Shown here piece after piece: positions 15,383-21,634 of a stretch of 64,000 nucleotides of DNA. The notes under the pieces were generated by a model that was given only the letters and a program-made list of their open reading frames with translations, was not told the origin of the DNA and made no database searches. A program made the translations under genes and the position numbers. Each line of letters starts with the position of its first letter. Positions within the stretch are counted from its first letter, which is position 1. Source of the stretch: Calcarisporiella thermophila CBS 279.70 (taxonomy: Eukaryota; Fungi; Calcarisporiellomycota); NCBI RefSeq assembly GCF_041956535.1, contig NW_027192195.1:242336-306335 (forward strand). The letters are read 5' to 3'.

Positions 15383-17063
15383 CTAATCTCTCCGATACTT
15401 GTAAGTGATCACCGGACGAAATGTGGCGACCACAGAAATGATCCCCAGGTCGACCAAATCGCTGATGACCGTGTCGATGGATTTGTACGCTTCCGGAGCC
15501 TCCTCTAACAAAAGCTCCCGGTCCTCACATATAACCGTGCTTCCAAGCGGGGTAGTCTTGAGATGATCGACGTTGGCCCGGTATTTTTCCTTAAGGCGAG
15601 AGCTTGCTTTCGAGCGCGTTAGACGGCGGCCAGCTCCGTGCGCCACGGAATATCCTATACAATATATTGGATTAGGAGAGGCCATGAACTCAGGTTATTG
15701 TAGTAACCTAGGCAAAAATTAAAAACAATTACCATTATGACTCTGGTTGCCGCGACTTTTTACCAAGTAGCTGTAGCTGCCTCGTGACCCAGGGATGACC
15801 ATAAAGCCCATATCAGAGGGGGCGGCGCCTTTCCGGTGCAGCCATAGCTCGCTCGATTCTGAATCGGAAGTTGGGTCGGTAGAGGAATCGAGGGAGACCG
15901 TCTTGCGGACGATGTTATTATGCCAGAGATCCAACAACTTAGGTGTGACGGCATCCGAAGACTCCACTTGAAGTAGAGAGAATATGCGGTGTGCTATGAG
16001 GTCGCGATTGGCCTTGGCCCACATACAGGCATGGTCGTGAAGCTTCATGTAGGCGTCAAATTCTTCGGAGCCCACCGAGAGCCCCTTCGTTCCGTGGGGA
16101 GCGGTGTGTGCTTCTAGAATAGATTTGCCGTAGCCCCGAGATCCGCTGTGCACCAAAAGGAAGAGGTGGTCCTGGTCTACCTCGGCCCAGTCGCTCCAGG
16201 CTTCTTGGTCCTGTATACTCTCCACGGCCAGAAACTCGGCAAAGTGATTTCCGGCGCCAATCGTGCCAAGAGACCCATCAAAAGGCGTGGTTTCTATGTT
16301 CCTTTGAGCCAACCACTGCGATGTATTGCCTTCCCATGGGCGCTCCAACCCAACCAGCCTCTGCGCCAAAGTGGAGGGCTTCACCGTAGCCGGAATGGTG
16401 GTACAATAGAAAAGCGCCATCCCACAACCTATGTCGCCACCTACCAAGGCCGGGTAGATAATACTCTGTGTCCCGAATACGGCACCAATAGGATGGGAGT
16501 TGCCCGGATGCAAATCAGGCATTCCCAGCGCTAGACGCACGCCGGGGAGTTGAGCGGTGCTTTCTAACTGCTGGAGAGCCACTGGATCGATTTCAACCTC
16601 TTTGGCAAGGATGCGCAAGTCGACGGGCTGAGACAAATTGGGAGCGTGTGTCGTCGATGTTGAAGCAGTTTTCGACGGCCCAATAAAGTTTTCGCCGCAA
16701 GAAATTAGCAAGACACTAGATAGGAGTAAAAATAATTTTTTGTGAATAAAATCTCAAAGCGCAGGATAGTAATAAATGGCCCTTGTCGGCCGTGTCTTTA
16801 TCAGCTTACCAATCATCGTGTAGGCCTTCGGTGTATGCATTTCTATCCATAGTGTCGAACAGCTCCTTCCCGGTCGATTCGAAAATCCGAGTCGGCTTTT
16901 TGAGACGAAACTTTCTCTTGGCCAGCTCCAATATTTTGGTGTGAAACTGGATGACAGATACATTCTGATCATCGTCTAGTGGATCTGGCGACTCGACGAT
17001 CACCACGGTCCTGATGGTTTGATTGCAATTGCTGACTAGCGTGAGTCGTATTTTAGCAGGCAT
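15383..17063 (-). CDS. rtcB: RtcB-family RNA 3'-phosphate/5'-OH ligase of the release-factor-H-coupled (RtcB2-like) type with N-terminal KHA/ubiquitin-like domain, 3 exons
   Basis: MPDLHPG, GGDIGCGM, LGTIGAGNHFAE, VHSGSRG, WHN, LHRKGAAP, IPGSRG, SVAHGAGR, EEAPEAYK; in-frame GT-AG introns 16716-16809 and 15655-15732. Confidence 0.92.
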
Positions 17064-17947
17064 GCGGATTCTTGTGAGTGAGCTAGAGACAAAGCAAGCC
17101 AATGTAGTGAAATAAAATAAGAGGCTGCCATGGAAACTCTGCGTCCTTTATGCCCTATTTATAAGAGCAACCGCGATGGTGGATGGGATGGTTTAAAATT
17201 AAGATTATTGCTTCACTAGGCATGGCTAGACAACTCCACGTAGCAACAATAAGGAATATTTACCTAATGCAGCAATTCGCAGTCTTGCGAGTGATGTATT
17301 CATAATTCAACAGTCATATTAATTAGAATTACCAAAAGTACCAGGCTTACGGAAGCTGGCTCCTACTGCCAAAGCCAGCCAAAAATGATCTCATCCAGTT
17401 CTTCAATAATCTTAGTTTTTTTCTTTTTTTCGACGATCTATCCTCGAACTATGTGTTAACCGAAAATTATATCCAGAGGGAGAGACGCTGGTACAGCTAC
17501 AAGGATCTAGTGTCCATGGGTCCCCCCTGCAGTAACTCTACATCCAAACCTGCTTTCTCAGAATACGGCCGGGAATAATTTAATGCGTCATACAGTCCTT
17601 TATGGTTGGCCATAGCCTTCTAGGAAAAGAGTCAGGGATGCAACTGTGTTGGGGTCCCGTCCTCCTCGATGGCCTATGGCGGCAAAGAAATCTAGTGAGA
17701 GGTATACATGGAAAATGCGGATCCAAAAAAGGATGGAGCATTGAGATATTAATCTAGGTTATAATGTAGGTTAGGGGGTGCGGGATTATATTTTTAAATA
17801 TCCGTGCTAAGAATAAACACTTAAATTTCCGTTACACGGCCCGTTGCCACCCCCTTTAATATTAATACCTTAATATCCTGATTTCTCGGCATGGCTCAAT
17901 TTTAGTCAAGTCTCATAACTCGATCTCCCTCCTCTTTAAAGTGTATA

Positions 17948-20475: not shown

Positions 20476-21634
20476 ATGTTTATAGGCATCACTGGGATGC
20501 CATTTTGTGGCAAGCACACGGTGGCCCACTTCCTCGTGCAGCAGTATGGATTCCATTTTCTGGCGCTACGGCATGGAGTCACCCATAATGCGCGCGACTT
20601 TGGGGATGTCGAAGAGTTTGAAGCAGCAACAGACATGTTGAATTACGTGACGAAGCGATGGACGGAAAATTTTGTCACATGCGATGTGATTGATTTAGAG
20701 ACATTGAAAATTTTTCGGTAAACATCTCATGCTGTCCCGGTGGAAAATTGAGGAAACAAAAGCTGATCCTAGTGACTTTAGAAAACGGCCCTTTTTTTTG
20801 CTGATTGCAGTGGAATGCCCCGTAACAATACGATACCAACGCGCCATTGAAAGGTCTGAATCAACCACTGCTCTGCTTGCTTGTGTCATAGAAGCGCGAT
20901 GGCTAACGCTGCATGATATTCAACTATGAAACAGGTTCCGTTCCACTGGAAGAGAGGAGCCAACCTTCGAGTCTTTCGTGACCACCTCGGACGCAGCCCT
21001 CTTCAATTTGCACCCCACCAACCCCAAAGAGCCTAACTCTACCACCCCGCTCTATACCTGTCAAGCCTCTGCCGATATCACCGTCGTGAACCGGTATACC
21101 ACCCTGGCTCCATTGCACGCAGAGCTCTTAGAGCTCGACCTCGCCAATCCCGAAAGAATCAGACCGAGCTGGGATGCCTACTTCATGCACCTGTCGGATC
21201 TGGCGGCACGGCGATCAAACTGTATGAAGCGGAGGGTAGGATGTATTATCGTGAAGGACGGTCGCGTCGTCGCGACCGGATACAATGGGACGCCGCGTGG
21301 ACTGCCCAATTGCAACGAGGGAGGGTGCCCGCGTTGCAATGCGGGAACAGGGCAGGGGGCTGGTCTCGACAAGTGCCTTTGCCTCCACGCTGAGGAGAAT
21401 GCGCTCTTGGAGGCAGGGCGCGAGCGGGTTGGCGTAAACAGCATCCTCTATTGTAATACGTGTCCTTGTCTTGGGTGCGCAATCAAGATCATACAGACGG
21501 GTATCCATGAGGTGGTGTTCGCCAGGCCATTCCACATGGATGAGGAGAGCATAGCCTTGTTTCGCAGAGCGGGCGTCGTGGTTAGACAGCATTTACCCCC
21601 AAGCATGAAACTAGAGACGCAAAGGTTTATATGA
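20476..21634 (+). CDS. DCD1: dCMP deaminase with N-terminal P-loop-like domain, 3 exons
   Basis: MFIGITG...GK; RPSWDAYFM; RSNCMKRRVG; TGYNGTP; CLHAEENAL; PCLGC zinc-site motifs. Confidence 0.95.

Follow-up and report, generated by a model that had tools for sequence, protein, structure and literature searches.

RtcB ligases use GTP and Mn2+ to join RNA ends with a 3'-phosphate or a 2',3'-cyclic phosphate to 5'-OH ends. To our knowledge, direct repair of rRNA has been shown only in bacteria, and the only RtcB2 whose substrate specificity has been measured is that of E. coli, which is 43% identical to the protein that we describe here. E. coli RtcB2 is encoded in the rtcB2-prfH operon (Tian et al. 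2022, PMC9304027; Maviza et al. 2022, PMC9223846; PMC13166195). According to Tian et al. (PMC9304027), it mends 16S rRNA that carries a cut in the decoding centre, and it repaired fewer than 2% of the tRNAs that had been cleaved, while RtcB1 has the opposite preference. Repair of rRNA by E. coli RtcB2 is possible without PrfH (PMC13166195). Tian et al. also list 98 eukaryotic RtcB2s, mostly from fungi and plants, and predict that these repair the 40S subunit without PrfH (PNAS, PMC9304027). The idea of ribosome repair by eukaryotic RtcB2s is, then, already published as a prediction.

We analyzed a member of this eukaryotic group from the fungus Calcarisporiella thermophila, to which the same functional prediction applies. 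The passages of Tian et al. 2022 on this group mention neither an additional domain nor gene structure nor an experiment. We add a conserved N-terminal domain, shared introns, and the genome-wide lack of both PrfH and archease beside a complete Trl1. The gene is on the minus strand at positions 15383–17063 of the window (the whole stretch of DNA that was analyzed, 64,000 nucleotides). As read from the sequence, it has three exons and two GT-AG introns and encodes a product of 502 amino acids (Table 1). An earlier, sequence-only reading had claimed that three exons join in frame into an RtcB, and this is what we found: the spliced product is identical to the stored protein P0001, which NCBI annotates as [quoted passage not shown]. 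The start of exon 1 agrees with that of the orthologues, where “MP..R.TL” is conserved, and intron 1 interrupts the last strand of the N-terminal domain. Transcription and splicing in C. thermophila are predicted from the annotated model, the conservation of the introns, and the transcripts of homologues.

Table 1. Features of the RtcB2-type gene of C. thermophila, in positions of the window.
Feature	Positions	Strand	Remarks
Exon 1	16810..17063	-	ATG at 17063; codons 1-84 and 2 nt of codon 85; most of the N-terminal beta-grasp domain
Intron 1	16716..16809	-	94 nt, GTAAGC...AG, phase 2, within codon 85
Exon 2	15733..16715	-	end of the beta-grasp domain, linker, and RtcB core to residue 412 plus 1 nt
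Intron 2	15655..15732	-	78 nt, GTAATT...AG, phase 1, within codon 413; CTAAT branch-like site
Exon 3	15383..15654	-	C-terminal part of RtcB, including the AHGAGR motif; TAG stop at 15385-15383
N-terminal CAD/DCX/KHA-type beta-grasp domain, residues 1-98	16676..17063	-	span includes intron 1
Linker, residues 99-116	16622..16675	-	low complexity, predicted to be disordered
RtcB2-type ligase core, residues 117-502	15386..16621	-	span includes intron 2
Cys182 codon, DIGCG motif	16424..16426	-	aligns with C78 of E. coli RtcB1; invariant in 66 aligned homologues
His418 codon, AHGAGR motif	15638..15640	-	aligns with H337 of E. coli RtcB1; nearly invariant
Candidate TATA-like box TATAAATA	17156..17163	-	about 100 nt upstream of the ATG; read from the sequence

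The ligase core belongs to the RtcB2 type. Pfam's RtcB model (PF01139, cut-off 27 bits) matches exon 2 at 155.4 bits (E = 3.6e-45) and exon 3 at 63.3 bits (E = 3.3e-17; profile positions 345–425). The NCBIfam model NF007153 matches exon 2 at 296 bits (E = 3.2e-88) and exon 3 at 118 bits, and TIGR03073 matches exon 2 at 266 bits. The full-length protein passes the cut-offs of both of these RtcB2 models, with scores of 425.3 for NF007153 (cut-off 407) and 366.9 for TIGR03073 (cut-off 271.8). E. coli RtcB2, whose gene adjoins prfH, scores 642.8 and 618, respectively, whereas E. coli RtcB1 fails both models (173 and 144). Similarly, the core is 51% identical to the bacterial RtcB2s P0073 and P0065 and 43% identical to E. 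coli RtcB2, as compared to 29% for E. coli RtcB1. The gene next to that for P0073 is prfH (227 bits for TIGR03072, with a cut-off of 166.65). The match to any solved RtcB sequence is only 78–91 bits, and to human RTCB it is 77.9 bits. These scores and identities bear out the earlier assignment of the protein to the RtcB2 or PrfH-coupled type and not to canonical eukaryotic RTCB.

All 10 of the catalytic residues that we aligned are kept. D75, C78, N167, H168, and H185 of E. coli RtcB1 correspond to D179, C182, N241, H242, and H274 of the C. thermophila protein, and R189, H281, H337, R341, and R345 correspond to R278, H350, H418, R422, and R426. In E. coli RtcB1, D75, C78, N167, H168, H185, H281, and H337 are the residues involved in metal binding and guanylylation, H337 being the guanylylated histidine. 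The sequence-only reading had listed a set of intact motifs, and all of them are present, but it placed the metal-binding aspartate in PDLH: the equivalent of D75 is D179 in the DIGCG motif, not D152 of PDLH, although D152 is invariant in the family. The AF2 model of the full-length protein has high confidence (pLDDT 92.7) and an RtcB fold; Foldseek's top match to it is RtcB-GMP/Mn from P. horikoshii (4dwq_A; E = 7.3e-29, TM scores of 0.64 and 0.67). Judging from its sequence, the C. thermophila protein is an RtcB2-type ligase with a complete catalytic core, and it very likely has ligase activity.

The closest characterized relative, E. coli RtcB2, matches the same NCBIfam models and shares the compact core of about 380 amino acids and all of the catalytic residues. 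Unlike E. coli RtcB2, the C. thermophila protein has an additional beta-grasp domain of 98 amino acids and a linker, and its gene is nuclear, contains introns, and has no prfH anywhere in the genome. Canonical RTCB (HSPC117 from humans, or its archaeal counterparts) and E. coli RtcB1 have the same fold and catalytic residues. The C. thermophila protein differs in its low similarity to both, and its genome lacks archease and has Trl1 to cover tRNA splicing.

The RtcB locus described here is the only one in the C. thermophila genome, and no canonical RTCB is found there. PrfH has no match above the cut-off of TIGR03072, either in the window, where the sequence-only reading had seen no PrfH-like gene, or in the whole genome. 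There are three weak matches to TIGR03072 in the genome (71, 65, and 30 bits), which, judging from the translations of their open reading frames, resemble RF1-, RF2-, and C12orf65-type release factors. The earlier reading had also proposed genome-wide searches for archease and Trl1. We found no archease in the whole genome, while Trl1 is complete, with its ligase, kinase, and CPD domains (C1:409230-411550). Because a complete Trl1 is present and PrfH, archease, and canonical RTCB are not, the ligase most likely works in RNA repair and not in tRNA splicing.

The N-terminal domain (residues 1–98) is modelled by AF2 as a five-stranded beta-grasp with the order strand-strand-helix-strand-strand-(helix)-strand (pLDDT 87). 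Its best structural matches are CIDE-N domains (Z = 9.5, 9.4, and 8.8) and DCX domains (Z = 8.3, 8.2, and 8.1). DCX domains bind tubulin and CIDE-N domains pair with one another; we know of no ribosome binding by any of the closest folds. The domain is conserved in about 50 homologues, and an alignment of 34 orthologues shows this conservation.

The model and the structural matches agree with the earlier description of this region as a ubiquitin-like beta-grasp, while its more specific label of KHA was only partly right. Pfam's KHA model (PF11834) does not match residues 1–110 of P0001 even at E = 10, and none of the Pfam models scores above its cut-off for the N-terminal domain of the C. thermophila protein. 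Weak matches to KHA are found in 5 of the 34 orthologues (best E = 5.3e-5), as are weak matches to Ubiquitin_DCDC1 in 11 and to DCX2_DCDC1 in 8. On the other hand, hhalign matches the profile of the domain to residues 15–105 of P0122 with 97% probability (E = 8e-11), and Pfam identifies residues 24–86 of P0122 as KHA (59.9 bits, cut-off 29.6). The best hits from searching with the profile are DCDC1-like multi-doublecortin proteins (E down to 3e-33). These proteins have 1300–2150 amino acids and 5–9 matching stretches each, and Pfam names their domains DCX2_DCDC1, Ubiquitin_DCDC1, and DCX. Since the profile links the domain to KHA but the structural matches favor CIDE-N (CAD) and doublecortin, the accurate label is the CAD/DCX/KHA group of beta-grasp domains. 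CAD and doublecortin domains have been grouped together before (PMC1949818). The domain shares its fold with the described members of these families (PF02017, PF03607, PF24478, PF25510, and PF11834), but it falls below every Pfam cut-off and is fused to an RNA ligase. We did not find any paper that describes the conserved domain or its fusion to an RNA ligase, so the fusion appears to be undescribed. As leads only, an Atlas search gave KHA as the first feature match (0.80) and a KCTD9-like model with a TM score of 0.66.

The linker between the two domains is probably flexible. In the full-length model, pLDDT drops below 50 at residues 103–110, and the span of the orthologues that aligns to residues 98–117 of P0001 varies from 11 to 62 amino acids. 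We found no second copy of the N-terminal domain in the C. thermophila genome, which rules out pairing with a partner that has a paralogous domain, as in CAD/ICAD.

The fusion of the N-terminal domain to RtcB is shared by many fungal phyla and is also found in Nuclearia, the amoebozoan Arcella, and the lycophyte Selaginella. In Nuclearia, an open reading frame from the transcriptome (P0026) contains both domains on a single mRNA. Intron 1 is at the same alignment column and in the same phase in the mortierellomycete Lobosporangium (P0035) and the chytrid Spizellomyces (P0163), and the same is true of intron 2 in Punctularia (P0055). In a phylogenetic tree, the bacterial sequences lie on one side of a branch (SH-aLRT 99%) and all of the proteins with the N-terminal domain lie on the other. 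The breadth of the fusion and the intron positions shared with distant fungi contradict the earlier suggestion of a recent acquisition by fungi; they indicate that the eukaryotic RtcB2 clade with this domain is old and has persisted from before the divergence of the fungal phyla. The root of the tree falls among the eukaryotic sequences, but this placement is unreliable as a guide to the direction or the donor of the ancient transfer, as E. coli RtcB1 is the sole outgroup and has a branch length of 8.4. Most Dikarya lack the family, as reportedly do the Mucorales (PMC10946435), so its function is dispensable.

Our best explanation, which we consider reasonably probable as a whole, is that this gene encodes an old eukaryotic RtcB2-type ligase for RNA repair, with the beta-grasp domain tethered to the N-terminus of the core by a flexible linker. 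A repair role is likely, and Trl1 would handle tRNA splicing. By homology with E. coli RtcB2, the most likely substrate would be small-subunit rRNA after cleavage by a ribotoxin in the helix of the decoding centre, which is universally conserved; 18S rRNA of the 40S subunit is plausible as the substrate, at best an even bet. As a guess, the beta-grasp domain could act as an adaptor and guide the ligase to a target or a partner. PrfH in bacteria has a different job, as it frees the damaged ribosome of its peptide, which makes repair faster. Colicin E3 is reported to cut the 18S rRNA when ribosomes isolated from eukaryotes are exposed to it (Turnowsky 1973 and Suzuki 1978, as cited in PMC4639596). 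Against this reading, no ribotoxin is known that cuts the decoding centre of eukaryotes in vivo, as PMC9304027 states.

This gene family gives a handle on the question of whether cut ribosomes are mended in eukaryotes or only degraded. Its RtcB2-type core is intact and is present in organisms whose tRNA splicing does not depend on it; the bacterial partner PrfH is missing, and a conserved ubiquitin-like module is carried in its stead. A bolder proposal, possible but doubtful, is that many eukaryotes (several fungal phyla, nucleariids, amoebozoans, and a lycophyte) keep a cytosolic RtcB2 that works independently of PrfH and reseals 18S rRNA of 40S subunits after cuts in the decoding centre, with the beta-grasp domain recruiting the ligase either to damaged subunits or to factors by which stalled ribosomes are split. 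If true, this would give eukaryotes their first dedicated pathway for rRNA repair, and undiscovered ribotoxins would have to act on the decoding centre of eukaryotes. The domain fusion offers a testable way of finding the partner or the target of the ligase.

Other roles for an intact ligase can be imagined. It might join or cap other ends, such as those of mRNA, other non-coding RNAs, or DNA with a 3'-phosphate, or it might act in RNA granules that are linked to the cytoskeleton via the doublecortin-like domain. The N-terminal profile does match DCDC1-like multi-doublecortin proteins best, DCX domains bind microtubules (PMC1949818), and substrates are known to differ among the RtcB paralogues of bacteria (Maughan and Shuman 2015). 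We consider this unlikely, as no particular alternative substrate is indicated and the protein scores above the equivalog cut-offs for RtcB2. Quite unlikely, in our view, is that the ligase backs up Trl1, either as a second, direct-ligation enzyme for splicing tRNA and HAC1 mRNA or in repairing tRNA, for instance after attack by anticodon-nuclease killer toxins. RtcB enzymes can splice tRNA and HAC1 in yeast (Tanaka et al. 2011, as cited in PMC10946435), fungi encounter toxins that cleave tRNA (PMC10946435), and the catalytic site is intact. Yet the genome has a complete three-domain Trl1, the distribution of the family is patchy, and the protein passes the models that RtcB1 fails; it is RtcB1, not RtcB2, that prefers tRNA in E. 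coli (PMC9304027).

The ligase could instead repair the bacterial-type small-subunit rRNA of mitochondria and not the cytosolic 40S. The enzyme is of bacterial type, mitoribosomes retain a bacterial-like decoding centre, the genome encodes the organellar RF1-, RF2-, and C12orf65-like GGQ proteins, and the first 23 residues of the protein include three basic residues and no acidic ones. However, the N-terminus (“MP..R.TL..N..Q”) forms strand 1 of the beta-grasp (pLDDT 89–95), and in nearly all orthologues its conservation begins at residue 1. Because the extreme N-terminus is part of a folded strand, there is no room for a cleavable presequence, and we regard a mitochondrial role as very improbable. 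Finally, the closest non-eukaryotic relatives are bacterial, at 51% identity, as might be expected of a bacterial contaminant or a very recent transfer, and a decaying pseudogene could also be considered. We see next to no chance of any of these. Two spliceosomal introns interrupt the gene at positions that are common to distant fungi, and the gene lies among fungal genes on a fungal contig of 1.3 Mb. Its reading frame is intact, all catalytic residues are kept, and the tree separates the bacterial sequences from the proteins with the N-terminal domain. As far as sequence evidence reaches, the introns, the contig, the intact frame, and the tree reject a contaminant or a pseudogene, and the RtcB2 locus of C. 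thermophila is a genuine nuclear gene.

The surroundings of the gene are not conserved: we found no shared neighbour, and unrelated genes flank three orthologues. In the window, the neighbours encode a methyltransferase, SDH2, a small protein without a Pfam family, a Reeler-domain protein, and a deaminase.

The sequence-only reading had proposed a three-exon gene, and its coordinates proved exact: the ATG, the TAG, two GT-AG introns and in-frame junctions can all be read. We searched this splice model one exon at a time. A word search with exon 2 returned the stored 502-aa protein P0001 (NCBI "uncharacterized protein VTP21DRAFT_9196"; 100% identity, on a 1.34 Mb contig) of Calcarisporiella thermophila, an early-diverging fungus (phylum Calcarisporiellomycota). 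P0001 is identical to the three-exon product, including both junctions, so we used it for all whole-protein analyses.

Four indirect lines of evidence support exon 1 as part of the ligase gene. Because intron 1 lies within the N-terminal domain (N-domain, residues 1-98), exon 2 encodes the last strand of this domain as well as the linker and the ligase. Dozens of species have independent annotations or assemblies with this architecture of N-domain plus ligase, and a transcriptome-derived ORF from Nuclearia (P0026) has both parts. Also, the "MP.." start is the conserved start of the family. We consider it next to impossible that the gene is an artefact.

Features of the ligase gene, its surroundings in the window, and related loci elsewhere
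Feature	Location	Strand	Remarks
Sequence TATAAATA	17156-17163	-	about 100 nt upstream of the ligase start codon
Exon 1	17063-16810	-	ATG at 17063
Intron 1	16809-16716	-	GT-AG, 94 nt
Exon 2	16715-15733	-	between introns 1 and 2
Intron 2	15732-15655	-	GT-AG, 78 nt
Exon 3	15654-15383	-	TAG at end
ORF, 175 aa	14177-14704	+	flanks the ligase gene
ORF, 187 aa	18069-18632	+	flanks the ligase gene
Deaminase-like ORF	20978-21634	+	zinc-binding domain, 87 bits
Trl1	C1:409230-411550		C. thermophila contig C1
RF1-like gene	L004
RF2-like ORF	L005:1450-1848 (G000 C11, near 290350-290676)		"SPF"-type motif (RISPFD...) beside GGQ
C12orf65-like gene	L006
Selaginella moellendorffii P0012	L017:3001-4425 (scaffold GL377630.1)		474 aa, N-domain present, intronless

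Exons 2 and 3 both match Pfam's RtcB family, at 155 and 63 bits, respectively. We compared the whole protein to two NCBI models for the compact PrfH-linked type of RtcB, NF007153 (cut-off 407) and TIGR03073 (cut-off 271.8). P0001 scores above both (425.3 and 366.9), as does the RtcB that adjoins prfH in an E. coli O103:H2 genome (RtcB2; 643 and 618); RtcB1 from E. coli K-12 is below both (173 and 144). In BLASTP alignments, identity over the core is 51% with two bacterial homologues, P0065 and P0073, 43% with E. coli RtcB2, and 29% with E. coli RtcB1. The P0073 gene shares 4 nt with the gene that follows it, whose product passes the PrfH model (227 bits, cut-off 166.65). Because the best scores of P0001 against all solved structures are only 78-91 bits (77.9 for human RTCB), it lies outside the canonical eukaryotic RTCB group; together with the two models, this bears out the proposed assignment to the RtcB2 type.

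The metal-binding and guanylylation motifs had been read as intact, and every residue that we checked against E. coli RtcB1 is retained in the alignment (D179, C182, N241, H242, H274, R278, H350, H418, R422, and R426). The full-length AlphaFold model (pLDDT 92.7) has Pyrococcus RtcB with GMP and Mn2+ as its top Foldseek match (E 7e-29). That P0001 is a GTP/Mn2+-dependent 3'-phosphate/5'-OH ligase is a prediction that is hardly in doubt.

The N-domain had been described as a KHA domain with a beta-grasp fold. Modelled alone with 34 orthologues (pLDDT 87), it has the order strand-strand-helix-strand-strand-(helix)-strand, as in beta-grasp proteins. In an exhaustive structural comparison of this model, CIDE-N domains came first (Z 9.5, 9.4, 8.8), then doublecortin domains (Z 8.3, 8.2, 8.1), with PB1 and ubiquitin-like domains lower (Z 7-7.7); Foldseek was consistent with this ranking. 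So the fold was right. A direct match to KHA did not hold, as a Pfam search with residues 1-98 found zero families even at E 10; the KHA assignment stands only in the wider sense of the CAD/DCX/KHA group. CAD (CIDE-N) and doublecortin form one group within the ubiquitin-like superfamily (Burroughs et al. 2007, PMC1949818). Across the 34 orthologous N-domains, the weak Pfam matches were to Ubiquitin_DCDC1 (11), DCX2_DCDC1 (8), KHA (5), and CIDE-N (5).

Among 120 listed homologues, phmmer matched the N-domain in 37 and an HMM built from it matched 49. Conserved motifs are "MP..R.TL..N..Q", "AKNKLRLKK", and "VS.GE.(F/Y)VG". Against 1.8 billion representative proteins, the N-domain profile found 424 at E <= 0.001. 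Most single-stretch matches, in proteins of ~440-650 aa, are N-terminal, and all four of these proteins that we scanned have RtcB after the match. The proteins of a second set are longer (1300-2150 aa) and match the profile over 5-9 stretches each; Pfam names their domains DCX2_DCDC1, Ubiquitin_DCDC1, DCX, and KHA. The profile's best match within P0122 (residues 23-96) is a Pfam KHA domain (59.9 bits, cut-off 29.6), and hhalign gives the pair a probability of 97%. Another protein, P0123 (1665 aa), is IQGAP-like (CH, RasGAP, RasGAP_C) with several doublecortin/KHA-type domains mid-protein. In P0211 (925 aa) and P0195 (946 aa), the N-domain and RtcB are preceded by a histone-deacetylase domain or by a weak match to Arrestin_N; these are probably merged models of neighbouring genes, but they could be genuine longer fusions.

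Residues 103-110 of the linker are disordered in the full-length model (pLDDT < 50), and the orthologues have between 11 and 62 aa in the span aligned to residues 98-117 of P0001. Given this predicted disorder and variable length, a tethered module would be a better fit than rigid docking.

Among fungi, we found the fusion in chytrids (Spizellomyces, Chytriomyces, Cladochytrium, Synchytrium, and others), Hyaloraphidium, Basidiobolus, many Mortierellomycota, Basidiomycota (Rhizoctonia/Ceratobasidium, Punctularia, Jaapia, Botryobasidium, and Phenoliferia), and one pezizomycete (Discina/Maublancomyces). Outside of fungi, it is found in Nuclearia, the amoebozoan Arcella, and Selaginella. We mapped intron positions on four homologues with a script that walks annotated proteins along their own DNA. 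Lobosporangium and Spizellomyces each have an intron that agrees in alignment column and phase with intron 1 of Calcarisporiella (codon 85, phase 2), and Punctularia has one that agrees in both with intron 2 (codon 413, phase 1); two more positions are common to Spizellomyces and Punctularia. These shared positions indicate that the ligase gene with its N-domain is older than the split of the fungal phyla that carry them.

We built a maximum-likelihood tree from 120 sequences. In it, a branch supported at 99% by SH-aLRT separates 57 short sequences without the N-domain, plus E. coli RtcB2, from the rest. All named bacterial sequences fall among the 57; on the other side are all N-domain proteins and a few N-terminally truncated gene calls. 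This topology fits a single fusion and a single ancient transfer between the bacterial and eukaryotic lineages. The sole outgroup is on a very long branch, so the tree is best read as unrooted, and the transfer may have gone in either direction. Selaginella P0012 is placed among fungal sequences and has no introns, versus 2-4 in the fungal genes; it may be a fungus-to-plant transfer or come from a foreign scaffold.

We checked the content of the C. thermophila genome by six-frame searches. It has a single RtcB locus, no second copy of the N-domain, no archease, and no PrfH-like GGQ protein above the cut-off. From their ORF translations, three weak GGQ matches resemble RF1-, RF2-, and C12orf65-type factors and are presumably organellar. 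Trl1 is present in full: its ligase, kinase, and cyclic phosphodiesterase domains follow one another.

We propose that P0001 is an RNA-repair ligase, and its likeliest substrate would be cleaved small-subunit rRNA. We prefer this reading because Trl1 is complete, so tRNA splicing has no need of P0001; because the target helix in the decoding centre is universally conserved; and because of the reported activities of E. coli RtcB2 and colicin E3. As described in PMC9304027, E. coli RtcB2, the one enzyme of this type to have been characterised, reseals 16S rRNA cut at the decoding centre by colicin E3-type toxins; it repairs <2% of cleaved tRNAs, and RtcB1 does the reverse. RtcB2 can work without PrfH on vacant ribosomes or free subunits; on translating ribosomes, PrfH makes repair faster (PMC13166195). 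With isolated eukaryotic ribosomes, cleavage of the 18S rRNA by colicin E3 has been reported (PMC4639596, citing Turnowsky 1973 and Suzuki 1978). With Trl1 present and bacterial RtcB2 so poor on tRNA, a back-up ligase for tRNA or HAC1 seems unlikely. There is a somewhat better, still small, chance that P0001 acts on another substrate altogether, and repair of the mitoribosome we consider quite improbable. In rRNA repair, the beta-grasp domain could be a tethered adaptor; this role is a guess, as the known relatives of the domain either bind tubulin or pair among themselves.

The central idea of eukaryotic rRNA repair by RtcB2 is already published: Tian et al. (2022) reported 98 eukaryotic RtcB2s, most of them in fungi and plants, and predicted 40S repair; they noted that PrfH is confined to bacteria and that a eukaryotic ribotoxin of the matching kind is not known (PMC9304027). 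Public records auto-annotate orthologues as "release factor H-coupled RctB family protein", and a 2024 study found no RTCB homologue in Mucorales (PMC10946435). In the literature covered by our search, no paper connected RtcB to a domain of the KHA, doublecortin, or ubiquitin-like kind. What we add is the recognition that a conserved CAD/DCX/KHA-type N-domain marks the eukaryotic RtcB2 clade, the dating of the fusion by shared introns, and the genome-wide picture of a complete Trl1 without PrfH, archease, or canonical RTCB. The function of P0001 is predicted only, and the gene is a good experimental way into eukaryotic rRNA repair.

Across the window and three orthologue loci, there was no conserved neighbour gene; the neighbours are unrelated housekeeping genes. 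Of the two flanking ORFs, the 175-aa one starts with a stretch resembling a signal peptide and matches no Pfam family, and the 187-aa one has a Reeler domain (E 2.4e-6). The deaminase-like ORF, with its cytidine/deoxycytidylate deaminase domain, could be either a dCMP deaminase or a subunit of a tRNA adenosine deaminase.
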